Positions 10,415-19,400 of a stretch of DNA of 64,000 nucleotides are shown piece by piece. The position numbers and the translations under genes are program-made. A model generated the notes under the pieces. The model ran no database searches, was not told the DNA's origin, and was given only the letters and a program-made list of their open reading frames with translations. The DNA lies in assembly GCF_902459465.1 (NCBI RefSeq), contig NC_047080.1, positions 11,470,001 through 11,534,000 on the forward strand, given 5' to 3'. Source of the DNA: Asterias rubens. Lineage: Eukaryota. The stretch's first letter is position 1. Each line of letters starts with the position of its first letter.

Positions 10415-13400
10415 CTGAGGGTAGAATCAGAGGGGAATAATCAAACATTGCTCCATACTGACCCAAATGCACATTTGTGGGTTGGTATACTGCTTTATAA
10501 TGAATATAACGTTCCTTCCTATTTCAAATTTTTTTGACAATTTTTTTAAAGAATTTGAATGAAAATTTTGAAGAGAAAAAAAAATGAAAAGGGAAAAAAA
10601 TAAATAGTGATAATAAAAATGTTGATGTAAACAATAGTTGGTCGGTCGCTCAGGAGAAAAAGGCAAACAATTTGTTTCCCGCCTTATCAATCGCTGCATT
10701 CAGAGTAGTAGCAGCCAGTTTGGACATCTAGTTTACCCCCAGTGTTTCAAATCCCACTAAATCTTGTATTTCTACTCACATTATATCATCCATCTCTAGT
10801 TTGAGATCAAAGCTAGGGTTGATCAACACGTAGGATAGTTTGTGTCTCTTATCGCTTACTTCACTGTCTGTATGGGGGAGCAGAATAAACAAAATGATTA
10901 TTTTAAATAAGAAAGCTCAGTCATAAACACGGCAGGGAGTTTATGCGATCTGATTGGTTGAAGAATGAAACCAAGGTAATGCCAAGCAAGCGTCTTAAAA
11001 AACAACAACAATTTTGGTGGCTTAATTTGTAAAGTGCATAGTCTGGTTTCTTCAAAGTATGCACAAATGATAATTATGTGATAAGAATCTAAAACAAATA
11101 TATAGAACGGGGGCCTACAGTATATCACATTTTTAGGGTCACACCGGCAAAACATCTGACCTGGCAACTTTAAACTAAGTAAAACATATTTGTTAAATAA
11201 CAAATATTTTTTTGAATTTATTTCTTACCATATTCTTCTGGAGGGAGGTCTATTTTCTTCATCTTCATTCTGATGATGCTGGCAATCTCTTTCCTCTCAT
11301 CAGACTGGCCCAAGGAAGAATTATCGTCATCTTCTATGGTCACAGACAACTATAGAAAACAACAAACCACAATAATAGTAAGCATTTCTATGGCACTCTA
11401 CGATTAACAAAGCAAGAAAAAAGGAAAAGAAAAACAACTTTACTCCATAAAGTTAAATACCTCTGACTTCCAATGTGAGTACACACATAAAACACTACAT
11501 TTCCCAACACTTATGTAAATGGCAATGTTCCATACCTCTGACTTGTTATCGGCGTGACTGTGTGTCCTGTAAACACCAATGGGTATTTCATGCGTGGTAG
11601 AGCAGAGTTTTTGGTAGAGGCGGCCGTAGGTTCGAATCCACATGTCCTCGGCTATTATTCTCAGCTCACAGAGGTACCCTGAGCCAGGAGCTTGGTCCAA
11701 CCCAAGAAGCAGACGGGTGAAACTGATCATGTAACTTTTTACATATGACTGAATGACGGAAAAGATTAACAATTAATTTGTATAATAATAACAATTCTGC
11801 ATCTGTACTCAGCGATTATTCACAATATTTTTCAAAGCAATTTGATTTTAAATTTTTTTATTTTAAGCTGGATTTATTCACAAATTGTTGTTATAAATGA
11901 TAGGTAGGCAGATAGATAAAATGGCTCATAGTCAAAAGAAAAGGCTCAAGATTGAGTTTGGTAAAACAAACTAAAGAGAGATTGTGTCAAACGACCATTG
12001 CAGGTACCCTTTTACTCCTGGGTGGTTAGTAGCAATTGTAGTACAATAAGACTCACCTGATAGAGTAGTGTATCCAACATGCTTGCACTGAAAACATTGC
12101 CAGCAGAGAAAGGCAATCTGAACATGTAGGCAATATTAGAACCTTTCTGTTTCTCAATCTGTTATCAGAAAATAACAATAATATTAATCAACTCGTTACT
12201 TAAATGTTTTAACACAAACAACCGTTGCTGGTGACCAACTTGTTGGACCACTCTTAGTGTGAAGCACATACATATTCTTACACAACAGAAGTTTTTGTTC
12301 AAAGGCCAATTTGTGCACATTCTGTTTTCATGTTGGTTAACAGCAGAATAAAGCAAAGGCCAAGCGAGTTTTTTGTGTTACAGTTCTCGAAAATTCAAAG
12401 TTCGCATTTGCTTAAAAAATGTCTTTTGACCCGGGAGATTTTATAATGATACCTTTTCCCTGCTTTCTTGTACAATTCTTGTTGGTATTAGGGCGAGAGA
12501 CGAATCTAGTTTACCTTTTGTTTGTCGGCCATTTTGAGTGCGTAGGTGTCCTTTGCTCTGAACTGCATAAATCTCATGTTTGATGGATGTGTTAGCTCGG
12601 TGATGATGCTCACATGTGGGAACAACCTTGAAGAAAATCATCAGAAATTATTGCATCTTTTTCTACTGATTTAAACAGAATTGTGCTAAGTAATATCATT
12701 TTGGACCTGATTTCGTAGAGCTGCTTAAGCACAAACAGCAGCTAAGCACAACAATGTTATGCTTACCAGAATAAGGTTACCAGCCAAACTACCATGTCAG
12801 ATGTGCCATCTATGACTGGAATCCTGCTCAATATTGCTCAGCAACATAATTTAGGCAACATTTTATGCTTAAGGTATGAGTTTAGGCACAGCTTTATAGA
12901 ACTTGGATCGATTTCAAAAGGTGCTTAGATTTGTTTTTAGATGAGTTGTCAATATTACCATAATGATTAGTGTTGTGACACCACACTTTGATACTCATGT
13001 GTTTCTGTAGATAAGATAAATCTTAGCTTTTAGTGAAATCCGCCCCATGGTTGTCACTTACTTGAATAGTGTTTGTACAGCAACAATTTGATTAGCGTCG
13101 GCCATGTAGTCTTCATCGGCTAGTTTGGAACTCTCCTTGTCAACGACGACCACTGTATCAGCTTGAAGGATACCAGCCCTCAAGACATCATCGTAACTAT
13201 AGGCAACCAAATAAATCAATCAAATTATTCAATGTGTTCTTCTCTTCTAGCAGTCGGCTCAAAAATAATTGTTGATGGAAGTTTTTTATTGACTTACTTT
13301 TCAATTGTTCCAATCATGTAGTAGACCATGGGGAAGGATAAGATGCAATCCAAGAAGGAGGAATCTGGCCTGAAAGACAGGAAAGGCGCAGAATGGTAAT

Positions 13401-16400
13401 AACATCATATCAAAGTTGAAATTGTATGTATGTTTATCAAATTAATATCATTACACGACTGACTGTTAATGTACAATCGAATTAACTTCATTTATTATGA
13501 GTTGGGGTTGAACAAGGACCAATTTACAAAAGCGGGATTTGAACCAATGACCTTTCACATTAAAATGCCGGTGCTCTACCAACCAATAAGGCCAATAGAT
13601 TGTAACAAAAAAGTCAAAAGGTAGCGGTTGATAGATTCTCTACATCATTTCAAATAGACATCTGAAGGATTGGTCACTTCATGGGCTGAAAATCAATGAA
13701 AAATCCTGAAATCAATAGAAATCCTAATTAATCACATACCTGCTTCCAATAGATTGTCAAAACATTACTAAGTAGGCCTACTATCACAACATGTCTGCGT
13801 GAAACATCTAAACAAACGACCAACTTTGGCAAAAAAACATTGCCCCAAATACGACAAGATTGTTACCTCTTTTCTAGAAGAACAACAATTGGCTTGAGGG
13901 TGTGTTTGGGTCGCCAGTGAGCCCTCAGTGGTACTACAAAGTTGATCATAGCTAAGGCAGCATACTCAGCAGCGATAATGATGTTATTATTTGGCCAGTT
14001 ATACTCGGCTGCATGTCTGTAGCTGCAGTGCTCACACGGCTGGAAAAAACAACAACAATAACAAATAACATTTTAAAGTGAAACATTGTCTGGCAAACTT
14101 TTTAAGCTTAGATAAATTACTGGAGAAAGGGCATAAGCAATTGATGTGCAAAATTGTGTTTCAAGACAACTCGGTGTGAAAGTTTGATCAGTTTTGTTGC
14201 ATATCATTTAAGCCTGGTTCATACTTCCTGCAAATGCGAATGCCAAGTGAATTATGGACACGCAACTATCGGTACACGCTCAACTTCCTTTTGAGACGCA
14301 ATGAAACTCGCTCCGCTCGAAGCATTCGCAGGAAGTATGAACTGGTCTTAAGTCATCACAGGAAAGTTAAACTCTGCATGAGTATGGGAAAACATCTCTT
14401 CAGGGTAATTCTAGCAACAAAAATGTAACAGTAGTGTCACATGATTTGTTTGTGTCAAGAGCCATTTTATAGCAATATAACGATACATCATTCTGTTTTA
14501 GAACATTGCACTCCCATTTGAACAAGTAATAATAAATATTATGTTTGTGAAAACAAATAGTTTACCTGATCCAGTTCCAAGCAGCAGAACTGTTTAGGTT
14601 TGGTGAGCAGATGGCAGAGGGCAGGGGTGTAACCAATGTAAGGTAAGAAGGGCGGAGTTCCTTTAGTCCACCTGAGTCAATAATGTCACATCAGTTTTAA
14701 TTAAAAAGTCAACAAGGTCGCTAATGGAATTCTAGAAATAACACTCACAAACAGAAGCAAAGACAAAATTAAGTTTCGATAAATACATGAATCAAGTTGT
14801 ACAGCTAGTGATGTATGTATGATGTTTATGTATGAGTTGAAGTTTTGCATGGTATGACATGGTTTTAACGATTCAATTAGAAATCATTGTGATAGACAGA
14901 TTCAATTAACTACCAGTGCACTATAGCATGTCATAAGCAATTTCTGACATTTTTATTTCTAGCCTAAACGTAAAGTCTAAAATACACCAACAAGAGCCAT
15001 TAAAAATAAAACAAATACAAATTTTAAATACAGACAACAATATGTGCAAGTGAAGACTGAATATATTTGATAAAACAAAATGTGCGCTCAATGTGAGAGA
15101 AGGTGAGAGAAGGTGTTTAAATGACACTGATTTGACATCTTGGGTCAGAAATAACCTAAGTTGCAAGAATTTGCTCTTGTGCAGCCAACTTTGATTTCTT
15201 GGATTCAAAATGATGTGATGAAAGAGAGGCTGGATGGCAAAATAGTCTGGTATCTTGTGATGTAGTACTTGTTTTAATCATTGTTGTTTACAGGGAACAA
15301 CTCAAAAGGTGGACCTATCACATAAAAAGATCTTGCGGTTAAATTTCAACACGGTTTGTGCTGGAGGTAGAATTTGGCAAAATGCATACATGCTACTTGC
15401 ATGCTTCATGTTATTTAATTATTGCATACATTGTTCTATCTAATCCTTATCTGATAGCAATGTTAGCTAACTTTATCCTGCAACCCAAAGGGAAGGCATA
15501 AGGAAACGGTCGTTACAAAAGCCTTTAAACTAATGCAATGATGCAATGATACTTGACCAGATACAAACATTAGCTAGATACATTGTAACAGTGTTTTATG
15601 CCACATACATTGTTCAGCATTAGTTATTCAACAAAATGAGAGTAACTGGGCCTATCATGATCAGCATTATAACAATTGGAAAGGTTTGACTTTTGCTGAA
15701 AATTCATGGCTGCTGTCAACAGCAATAACTGAAATTAACTTCAAGTTATCAGAAAGGATGATCCAATAAGACAACTCTGATCCCAATCACTTCGAGCGAG
15801 GAAAAGTTTTTTTCTTCACCACATTGGAAAAGTGAAAGTGCCTCAATTTGCTCTCAAGCTCTCTTGCACAAAACTAATGATTAAGTGACTTTGGATAGGT
15901 TACCAGCCCAGTTACTGACATTTATATCTGCTTAAGCAGTCTAGGTCCCATCCAGAATGTGCCAGCCATTGAAACATTAGTCACATCTTGCATTCGAGAC
16001 AAAGAGTTAAATGGCAAATTTAGACCTTTAAAACAAATGCCACTTTTAACTGTTTCTACAGTCAATCACCAATTTGAAAAACAAAATTTGGAAAACTTGC
16101 GACTGGCACATTTCTTTAGGGTCAAGCTCACCAAAAATATGAATAAAAAACAAGCGACATTGCGATATTAACTCCTTACGCTTTTGCTTGGATCATGCTG
16201 GCATCCAGGGTTTGGCTGGAAAAGGGTATGCGTGGGAATGGGAAATGGAACAGCCAAGGGGAATATATGAATATATGAATATTAATGAACACAGAGCAAT
16301 CCAAAATGCAAAATGTCTGATTAGTAGTGTGTGACTCAAGCAAAATGTTGAACCCTTACATTCTGACTCCACTCATGCTGGCTGCCAGCTGGTCGCTGAT

Positions 16401-19400
16401 TAAGTATGCACAGAAAATGGAATAGCCCAGAATATATGAATATGTAATTTAGCAGAAGTTTCTAAAATCCCAATTTTTCTCATGCGGGTTTCGTGTTTAT
16501 GAATTACACAAATCAACATAAAGAATCCACAAATTTTATTTCCCACAGAATCCATTCTGACATTGGATGGAATCATGCTTTCTGAAAGTTAGAAACTGCC
16601 ACAAAATTAAGAGGAAGTATAATAATGTGTTTTTTTCTCCCAAATTTAATTTACACACCAAGTGATGATGCAGGACAAAACAAACGTTCATCAGGTGCAA
16701 AGTATTATATGATCTTTAAGAGTATTACCTAGAAAGTTAAAGAAAGCTATTTATGGGGTAAACAAAGAATGATCTCACTATAGAGTGTGAGGGGACCGTA
16801 AGAGGGCATTGGAGGTCAATTAATAAAATCTTGCACAAAAATAAATTCAAGGTTTATCAAGTTATACTACAGGACTTCCCATAAGCCTTTTGGAGGTATG
16901 GCGAGTGATAGGGGTGTACTGCTTGGTTTGGGTGTATACACTCAAATTTACCCAAACCTTATAGTGTTGTAACATTGTGTCCGCCATGAGGTATGGCGGA
17001 CGTGATAGGAGTGCACTGTTTGGTGTGGGTGTATACACACAAATTTACCCAAACCTTATAGTGTTGTAACATTGTGTCTGCCATATCTCATAAAAGGCTT
17101 ATGGAACAGGCCTTCGTGAAGAATATGACTGTTTCCAAATTGGTCGCTACAGCCTCTAACTGGGTGAGCCAGAACTAGCCACCAATTTGGCCACAACCTA
17201 ACTATCTAAAACATGAGCAAAATTGCCTCTAAAGTGTCTCCGGAAATAAAACCTCAAATGATGGATCAGGAAATAAAAGTACTTACGGATCCTCCTCATC
17301 CCAGAGCTGTACATCTTCAGTGTCAACAAGATCAACTTGCTTCTGAGCATGAAGCAACTTCTCATCCCGTGGCTGCTCATCCTCTGGATCCGATGACATC
17401 ATCTCCAACACTGGCATGATGGATGGCCGGCGCCCTCTGTTGGCAGCGGCTGGCATCAGGAAGCCGTTGTCACCGTCCTCGCCCGCTGGGGGCATGAGGT
17501 GGTTGCGATCCATGGAGGAGGTGCCTGCCATCATCTCCAGGGAGGTACCTGAGGGGGAATGGAGTGGAGAGGAACGAAGGAGATATGGGTACTCTAAAGG
17601 GAGGCGGAGGAAGACGTGATGTTTGAGACGGAGAGAAACAAATATAGAGACGTTTGACGAGGAAGGACAACTAGACTTACAAAGACAGTACACTACACTA
17701 AGGTCCACTACACACACTGCTCTGAGCTGAAAACACATCCACAAATAAGTAAGCCTTACACAGTGAAGAAAGTAACTAGCTAACTAATTTAGCTAGAAAG
17801 TAAGAATTTTAAACGATGTTCTGAGGTAAACAAGAGACTTTGAAGCAACACGTTCACTCTCATTTGGGACTGGTTATGCTATTGGGAAAGCTAGAAGTCT
17901 GAACATGTCTATGCACGATTGACTCTTGGACTAAATTGCGAGGTTACGACGTCTGACCTCCTCCACGATGATTGGGTCAGGTGCGTCAAATCTGAACCAA
18001 TATATCCCCTCTCTTCGGACACATGAATGTGATGCTTGATGTACGTTAACTAGCACAAACCAAAATGACAGGTGTTTAGTAAACAGGTGCTAATTAATAC
18101 CTGACGATTCTCTACCTTCAGGGGACATGTAACTCTCTCTTGCTTTGGCTGGCCTGGTGGTTGCTGATGCCGTAGGGGATCCTGGTTTCCCACCGATGTG
18201 ATGCAACTCCAGTGCCAGTGTCCCTACGCTAGCGATGGCACTCTCAACCTTGGTCATCCCGCCGTTCTCAGGCGGCACATAATTCGATGTCTTACTGCTG
18301 TCTGTCTTCTCCTTCTGCTGATCCTCACGAGGATGGCGTAAGATGAAGGCGGAGTTCTCCTCCTTAGAGATGTTCATGTAGAAGCAGATGTCTGTACTGC
18401 GCATGATGTGACGGGGGCCGGGATTGAGCTGGATGGTGGCTCCCTCGTCAGTCTTCTGGATACCTATAAGGGCCACTCCGAATCTGAAACAAGTACATAA
18501 CAGACTTAGTGTGTGAGAAGCGCTTAAGTTATTATGTGATGTGTGTGTGGGCAAGTTTAACATAAGACTTTAGGCTATGTATTGTGGAAACAAACTAAAT
18601 ATTAAGTAAGGTTTGCGGTGACACCATGTAAAATCTACTATGTGAGTAGTGGTGGCTCTGAGAAGAGCCAGTTTGTTCTGCTCTAACAGACAAACTTGTT
18701 CTGGAGCACAACAAACTGGGTCTTAGCATAATGATGTACTTACTTTTTGTGAGCGTGGAATGATGCATAAGTAAAGCTCTTGCTCTCATATTCTCCAAAG
18801 AATCTACTGTCACCAAGCTTGATGTGGTACACCTCGTTGCCTGAACATCGTCCGTATGTACGCTGCCACTGAGAATTGGAATCACTGCCTTCCCTGGGTA
18901 GCAGAAAATCATAAAATTGTTATCTTCACAAATTTGTTTGTTATGAAACTAACAACTTCAATTTTGAGACTTCAAATATCAACAAAAGGATTAAATGGAA
19001 TTATAGTAGCACAGGACACCCTGAAGCTTACTCAGGGTGAGATTTGCATTCTTAAATTTTTAAACCAAAGATGTAGAGGCAGAGAAGCTTTTTATCTTGG
19101 TGATAATGTCCAAAACTGTACCGCTGGTCCTTAGAACATTTTTCAGCAAATTTACACTTTTTTCTTCTTCATCAACTCAGTGAATAAGGGACCAACATAT
19201 AGTATTGACATTTAGATGTTTAAAAACAATTATCTGATAACTATCTGAAGACTTCTAGTGGCAATAAATGAGATTAAAAGGCAGAATATCGTGGCTGTAC
19301 TTACTGTCCCCTTGAAGTGTGTATGAGTAGGGTGACGAATGTTGAGGTGGCAGGACAAAGACAGTTGTTGGCCAATAAAGCATATTTGAATTCATCCTCA

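Follow-up and report, generated by a model that had tools for sequence, protein, structure and literature searches.

Two tandemly duplicated 36-nt exons probably act as alternative cassettes in the RCK1-RCK2 linker of the Slo2 channel gene of the sea star Asterias rubens

The window analysed here is a stretch of 64,000 nucleotides (nt) of the Asterias rubens genome (contig NC_047080.1, positions 11,470,001 to 11,534,000), and the subject of this report is a pair of 36-nt segments, exon A and exon B, which lie together in one intron of a Slo2/KCNT-like K+ channel gene. The gene occupies the minus strand from ~58369 to 10279. When proteins were compared with the window by tblastn, the A. rubens 'potassium channel subfamily T member 2-like' isoform X1 (XP_033642764) matched most exons at 100%, whereas the A. 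amurensis orthologue differed from the window exons at places where the A. rubens protein matched them completely. The Pfam domains recorded for orthologues are PF07885 (Ion_trans_2), PF22614 (Slo-like_RCK) and PF03493 (BK_channel_a). Judged by its pore, its two Slo-family RCK domains and its KCNT orthology, the window gene can be assigned to the Slo2/KCNT channels of the Na+-activated type.

The intron that hosts the two segments is 2615 nt long and lies between 17287 and 14671. The exon upstream of it ends with ...GAT GAG GAG GAT CC at 17287, which encodes the acidic peptide ...WDEEDP and is followed by a GTAAGT donor, and the downstream exon begins at 14671 with G TGG ACT AAA GG, reading WTKG..PYIGY. 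A preliminary description of the sequence had placed the segments in the linker between RCK1 and RCK2. This was borne out, as the insertion site is located between the acidic ...WDEEDP end and the conserved PYIGY block that opens RCK2. The coordinates of the features are collected in Table 1.

Table 1. Features of the host intron and its flanking exons, in window positions.
Feature	Position	Strand	Content or evidence
Upstream exon, RCK1-RCK2 linker	17287..17593	-	sequence, tblastn 100%, RNA joints 17593/18101 and 17545(+3)/18098
Exon-A upstream module	16396..16450	-	UCAU repeats, motif copy GGCUAUUCCAUUU (16427-16415), UCUGUGCAUAC, UGC at -15, weak AU-rich stretch before AG
Exon A, 36-nt cassette microexon	16360..16395	-	RNA joints, RefSeq isoforms, conservation
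A-B intron, 144 nt	16216..16359	-	3' part (~16216-16295) is the paralogous module upstream of exon B
Exon-B upstream module	~16216-16295	-	UCAU repeats, GGCUGUUCCAUUU (16255-16243), CGCAUAC, strong pyrimidine tract before AG
Exon B, 36-nt paralogue of exon A	16180..16215	-	inserts of A. amurensis X2 and Acanthaster X2, conservation in five species
Asteriidae intronic island	15880..15980	-	30/30 three-way identity at 15966-15937; conserved like exon A in three asteriid genomes
Downstream exon, RCK2 start	14566..14671	-	sequence, tblastn 100%, RNA joints

The basic geometry given in the preliminary description was reproduced on the minus strand. Exon B starts exactly 180 nt downstream of the start of exon A, each exon has an AG acceptor and a GTAAGG donor, and both are open in the phase of the host intron, the first base closing a proline codon and two bases remaining at the end. 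Exon A encodes (P) + 11 residues + (M) and exon B (P) + 11 residues + (A); the two inserts have a common L-x-A-S-M core and divergent C-terminal halves. We also recovered the ungapped identity of 20/36 with the stretch GCCAGCATGA common to both exons, a level that a random 36-mer of the window attains at a frequency of only 6e-5. The host intron holds 61 open AG...GT candidates, and a donor of the GTRAG type was found only in A, in B and in a nested 18-nt version of each.

The similarity extends into the preceding intronic sequence, as had been claimed: the local alignment of the 60-80 nt upstream of A with those upstream of B scored 40, while the null maxima were 30 in 2000 shuffles and 29 among 2952 random genomic segments. 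The direct-repeat families D2 to D5 have a matching register of 172-180 nt. The homology of both the exons and their upstream introns supports, at the sequence level, the proposed origin of the pair by tandem duplication of exon and preceding intronic sequence. Being adjacent, homologous and equal in length and phase, A and B can be classed by their sequences as tandem exons. A derivation of A and B from the neighbouring exons was considered and rejected, as local alignments with the 60 nt that border the intron in each flanking exon did not surpass those of shuffled sequences (p values of 0.22-0.88 in four species).

Contigs assembled from four RNA runs were mapped to positions 13000-18600. 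Three of the runs (X1, X6 and X7) are from A. rubens and the fourth (X2) is from a close relative, its variant at 17367 agreeing with A. amurensis. The statements on joints refer to the 15 of 27 joints that were listed for the four runs, and contigs lose rare forms. The main Slo2 contigs of runs X1, X6 and X2 contained the joints 17287/16395 and 16360/14671, which give exon A precisely the boundaries that were predicted. In contrast to these, the main contig of run X7 (7166 nt) carried the joint 17287/14671, in which both exons are skipped. Thus, when the junction series 17287-16395-16360-16215-16180-14671 suggested in the preliminary description was followed in contigs, the inclusion of A and the skipping of both exons were seen in A. 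rubens, and the part of the series that involves B was not represented among the listed joints.

In addition, we compared 33 RefSeq isoforms (Table 2), nine of which belong to the brittle star Amphiura filiformis and have a cassette of their own that is neither A nor B. Six isoforms were from A. rubens, one further named member of the cluster not being among those listed. The 12-residue insert of A. amurensis isoform X2 (XP_071802075) is identical to the peptide of the window exon B, and the insert of Acanthaster isoform X2, PNLEAGMKAAKA, is the product of the exon B orthologue. The preliminary description had proposed a regulated switch with A, B, none or both. Of these forms, A, B and neither are on record in sea stars; 'both' did not appear, as A followed by B was found in 0 of the 33 isoforms and an A-to-B joint was missing from the listed RNA joints. 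Exon B was missing from the protein models of A. rubens and Patiria miniata that were examined, and the skipped form from those of A. rubens. The exon B 36-mer had no exact match in JGI metagenome contigs, the upstream exon retrieved from the protein database nothing but genomic-style open reading frames ending at the donor TAA, and a 74-residue piece containing B retrieved nothing new. The RNA contigs show A or skipping, the RefSeq models of two other sea stars show A, B or neither, and these results support A and B as genuine alternatives, with exon A as the major form and exon B as a minor one.

Table 2. Use of exons A and B in RefSeq isoforms of sea stars.
Species	A	B	Neither	A+B
A. rubens (six isoforms)	all six	none	none	none
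A. amurensis	X1, X3, X5, X6, X7, X9	X2	X4, X8	none
Acanthaster planci	X1, X3, X4, X6, X7, X8	X2	X5	none
Patiria miniata (single model)	yes	none	none	none

The corresponding loci of Acanthaster (L005), A. amurensis (L006), Patiria (L007) and another asteriid (the genomic contig L001) were compared with the window. Both exons were found in all five species including A. rubens, with AG and GTAAGG splice sites and an open frame, separated by 138-159 nt (144 nt in A. rubens and A. amurensis, 138 nt in L001, 159 nt in Acanthaster and 155 nt in Patiria). Patiria has an unannotated exon B that reads (L)NLDASMKAAK(A). The length of the intron in the sea stars compared is 2.6-3.2 kb, and when the A. rubens intron was searched by BLAST against those of Acanthaster and Patiria, the only significant matches were the two exons, each with its flanks. 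The alignment of orthologous introns thus showed that both 36-mers, with a GGCUGUUCCAUUU motif before each, are the only blocks kept in Forcipulatida and Valvatida. The preliminary description had named the 17287-to-14671 junction alone, together with unconserved 36-mers, as the outcome that would speak against its proposal; the A junctions are present and both exons are conserved.

Across species, A and A match at 28-36 of the 36 positions and B and B at 22-36, whereas A and B match at 15-20. Since A-A and B-B pairs are closer than A-B pairs, the duplication predates the split of Forcipulatacea and Valvatacea, and the conservation of both exons between Forcipulatida and Valvatida likewise places it before the crown sea stars. 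By sea-star phylogeny this corresponds to an age of >200 million years. Exon A is identical in L001 (36/36), and between Asterias and Valvatida it has 4-5 differences in synonymous codons and a single replaced residue (A to L), a pattern that indicates strong purifying selection on its sequence. Exon B is identical between A. rubens and A. amurensis (36/36) within an intron that is 90% identical around it. Across the sea stars it keeps the frame, the splice sites and an N/T-L-D/E-A-S/G-M...A core.

The possibility that the two 36-mers resemble each other by chance and that neither is an exon has nothing in its favour except their small size, and it is refuted by the shuffle statistics, the exact RNA junctions, the RefSeq isoforms and the conservation across two superorders. 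We therefore give it practically no credence.

Outside the sea stars, the corresponding intron of two sea cucumbers (L002 and L003) is ~500-785 nt long and contains no A- or B-like sequence. Among annotated proteins, those of sea urchins, crinoids, hemichordates, amphioxus and mammals lack an insert at this site, and mammalian KCNT1 isoforms do not vary there. The brittle star Amphiura filiformis (P0164, P0305) has a different 33-nt cassette, ATLLIWDEEDQ, at the corresponding intron position, which is included or skipped in its RefSeq isoforms. The resemblance of this peptide to the end of its own upstream exon (LLWDEED) suggests a separate partial exon duplication at this site.

Each of the two exons is preceded by UCAU repeats, a 13-nt motif GGCU[A/G]U[U/C]CCAUUU (that is, GGCU[A/G]UUCCAUUU) and [U/C]GCAUAC. 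The 13-nt motif was found upstream of both exons in Asterias and Patiria; in Acanthaster it is present at exon B, and the copy next to exon A is displaced or degenerate. About 0.5 copies within three substitutions are expected per shuffled intron. The exon-A module is identical at 29-30 of 30 positions in a three-way comparison within Asteriidae. A third, degenerate copy of GGCUGUUCCAUUU plus GCAUAC was observed in Valvatida ~130-145 nt upstream of exon A, at intron position 1281 in Acanthaster and 1134 in Patiria. It is followed by no recognisable exon and may be the relic of a third repeat unit.

The 3' splice sites of the two exons differ. At exon A, a distal pyrimidine tract is followed by UGC at -15, an AU-rich stretch poor in pyrimidines and the AG, and exon B has a strong pyrimidine tract at its AG. 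Two YCAY motifs occur in the 60 nt upstream of exon A and four in the same interval upstream of exon B (six by eye in ~75 nt), against a background of 0.97 per counting window, in which four or more occur in 1.8% of cases; 3-5 are present upstream of exon B in the other sea stars. The counts of six for A and two for B in the preliminary description thus fit if the labels are exchanged but do not hold as they were assigned. According to the Nova RNA map, repression and not activation is expected of an exon that is preceded by a YCAY cluster.

The UGC that had been described just before the AG of exon B was not found there. It is located instead at -15 of exon A, and in A. rubens the sequence upstream of B reads CGC. 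The UGC upstream of exon A is at -15 in Asterias, -28 in Acanthaster and -20 in Patiria, and that upstream of exon B is at -17 in A. amurensis and at -22 to -27 in Valvatida. The difference lies in position 16232, which is C in A. rubens and T (giving UGC) in A. amurensis, L001, Acanthaster and Patiria, the site being 15-17 nt from the acceptor of B. The C of A. rubens could be a fixed change or a polymorphism.

In microexons that depend on SRRM3/4, the pyrimidine tract and branch point are far from the AG and UGC lies between them (bioRxiv 10.1101/2024.09.17.613571). Exon A resembles these SRRM3/4 (eMIC) microexons in its distal tract, the UGC at -15, the weak stretch before the AG and the conserved upstream intron. 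However, its 36 nt exceed the strict class of 3-27 nt and fit only the broad one (up to 51 nt), and exon B departs from the type by its conventional strong 3' splice site and, in A. rubens, by the lack of UGC. Exon B is similar to Nova-regulated exons in having a YCAY cluster, four in the 60 nt upstream, but its tract is plainly C/U-rich with CA steps. Nova and Srrm4 are candidate regulators by the resemblance of short motifs, and the assignment to them is unproven.

The relation between the two exons was considered next to the mechanisms that could enforce a choice. We agree with the preliminary description that the 144-nt spacer does not force exclusivity sterically. Steric hindrance is excluded because the spacer measures 138-159 nt in the species compared, spliceosome incompatibility because both exons have U2-type GT-AG sites, and nonsense-mediated decay because all exon combinations, including A+B with 72 nt, are in frame. 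The main argument that B replaces A rather than adds to it is indirect: the models with B are without A, although A is present in the majority. A strict rule of one of the two does not hold, as the form with neither exon occurs in the X7 contig and, for A. amurensis and Acanthaster, among the RefSeq isoforms; A+B was seen in none of the isoforms compared or joints listed. A three-way choice between A, B and neither is thus a better name for the system than a strictly mutually exclusive pair.

These same features would also suit two independent cassettes, with A+B transcripts that are rare and have escaped annotation. The spacer can be spliced, both exons carry U2-type GT-AG sites, A+B and neither are in frame, none of the three enforcing mechanisms is possible, and the skipping of both exons already breaks a one-and-only-one rule. 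However, A is the majority form, and yet both B isoforms, in two independently annotated species, are without A, and A+B was found in none of the 33 isoforms. We consider independent use a possibility, albeit a somewhat unlikely one.

Exons A and B are very probably tandem-duplicated 36-nt alternative cassettes of A. rubens Slo2 that give three in-frame linker variants. Several observations weigh against this. All six A. rubens RefSeq isoforms carry A without B, and no exon-B joint was present among the 15 of 27 joints listed for the four RNA runs; the missing joint is not evidence of absence, because contigs lose minor forms and 12 joints were unlisted. The runs were without tissue labels and the joints are therefore not resolved by tissue. 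In A. rubens, the 60 nt before exon B contain no UGC, the changes in exon B are mostly non-synonymous and it evolves faster than exon A, and the support for exclusivity comes from automated gene models and not from read counts. On the structural side, an AlphaFold prediction for the gating ring carrying insert A reached a mean predicted local distance difference test score (pLDDT) of 49.5 and is too poor to interpret. In this prediction the inserts end a stretch of ~180 residues with pLDDT <50, about ten residues before the first modelled RCK2 strand.

Part of these observations could mean that exon B is a decaying or silent relic in A. rubens, where only A or neither would be used: B is in 0/6 isoforms and in no listed joint of the three A. 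rubens runs, the upstream UGC was lost in this species only, and B evolves faster than A. Nevertheless, the A. rubens exon is identical at 36/36 positions to that of A. amurensis, which is annotated in an isoform, its strong pyrimidine tract, acceptor, GTAAGG donor and frame are intact, and its upstream module is conserved. A relic therefore seems improbable to us.

The duplication of an exon along with intronic sequence has been proposed as a route to competing structures in tandem exon duplications (PMC6071210). In the present case, the choice between A and B could be made through competing long-range RNA pairing between a docking site and selectors, the latter being the GGCUGUUCCAUUU copies. 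The motif is duplicated with each exon and kept across sea stars, and several candidate partners were found. In Valvatida, an intronic TTTG[G/A]ACAGCCA lies ~375 nt into the intron (TTTGGACAGCCA at 369-380 of L005 in Acanthaster, TTTGAACAGCCA at 375-386 of L007 in Patiria). These sites are perfect 8-bp complements of the exon-B motifs of their own species, GGCUGUCC and GGCUGUUC, respectively, with one compensatory change. In RNAduplex scans of Asterias, the exon-A module paired best with the intronic island read as 15980-15880 (-21.4 kcal/mol, z ~-3.4), which ranked second for the exon-B module. In all four species, the core of the motif also has an 8-bp complement within the upstream exon, GAGCAGCC.

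Against such pairing, the helices are of 8 bp only, and each segment has 1-5 partners of that kind. None of the partners is common across the orders, as the Valvatida site is absent from Asterias and the Asterias island from Valvatida, and the exonic GAGCAGCC is accounted for by coding constraint. Because several candidates were inspected, the one compensatory pair is weak evidence. A search for known RNA families in the intron gave none at E up to 1 (Rfam), and the 621-nt region comprising A, B and the island folded no better than shuffled sequences (z = 0.05), leaving no global fold signal. The island had no Rfam match, special fold or clean in-frame exon and was not found in Acanthaster or Patiria; as a long-range pairing partner of the upstream modules it is, by these predictions, a weak candidate. 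We find it hard to credit that the locus is an exclusive switch more than 200 million years old, controlled by RNA structure, with the GGCUGUUCCAUUU copies as selectors that compete for, or are looped out by, a docking site (TTTG[G/A]ACAGCCA in Valvatida, the island or GAGCAGCC in Asterias), and a role of competing pairing in the A/B choice is just as doubtful. If it were true, it would be a natural example of the model in which duplication generates competing structures, in a deuterostome ion-channel gene.

The preferred reading, alternative cassettes born by duplication, suggests the following course of events. A unit of ~180 nt, comprising ~80 nt of upstream intron, the exon and the donor, would have been duplicated in tandem before the split of Forcipulatacea and Valvatacea. 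Splicing would then yield a linker with A (12 residues, the majority), with B in place of A (12 residues, the minority) or with neither. We infer that B is used in A. rubens too and that the two exons largely exclude each other. The choice may be set by the duplicated upstream module, which at A, with its distal pyrimidine tract, UGC and weak 3' splice site, is similar in layout to a microexon enhancer and at B has a YCAY-rich tract and a strong 3' splice site. The inserts, in turn, may tune the gating or regulation of the channel, as linker inserts do in BK channels.

The alternative peptides that the BK channel can carry between RCK1 and RCK2 change its gating and bring in regulatory sites (PMC4122160, PMC3256903, PMC3840924). 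By analogy, a modulatory role of the starfish inserts would be the most likely one. Similarly to BK (Slo1) linker inserts such as STREX, they are in-frame alternative peptides between the two RCK domains of a Slo-family channel; unlike STREX, they are encoded in the paralogous gene Slo2, their peptides are unrelated to it and they lack a cysteine-rich or palmitoylation motif. Mutually exclusive exons that are tandem duplicates have been surveyed in ion-channel and other genes (PMC5740500). The starfish exons are like these in being adjacent, homologous and of equal length and phase, in the co-duplication of the flank and in the replacement of A by B in annotated isoforms. They differ in the existence of a form with neither exon, in the absence of an evident enforcing mechanism and in a length of only 36 nt.

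The duplication of an alternative exon as seen here is not a new kind of mechanism. The automated annotation of the locus is partial, because exon A is recorded in A. rubens and exon B only in two other species. In the literature searched, the homology of A and B was not described, and nothing specific was found on Slo2/KCNT microexons or on the control of microexons in echinoderms. The locus is of interest as a clean and deeply conserved case of alternative exons that arose when an exon was copied along with the control sequence in front of it, in the KCNT family, which is of medical interest. It provides three natural variants of the Slo2 gating-ring linker that could be compared by electrophysiology, and with the duplicated 13-nt intronic motif, splicing experiments in echinoderms have a defined target.

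Two further observations concern the surroundings of the pair. The upstream linker exon has two acceptors, 17593 and 17548, which are 45 nt apart and have a common donor near 18101. The acceptor 17593 is used in the contigs of runs X6 and X2 and 17548 in those of X1 and X7, by which 15 linker residues are gained or lost. In each of the four RNA runs, two intronic stretches, 14122-14495 and 16740-17113, reached word depths of thousands and showed numerous loose ends as well as internal joints; high-copy repeats or fragments of transposons that are transcribed elsewhere are the most likely explanation.

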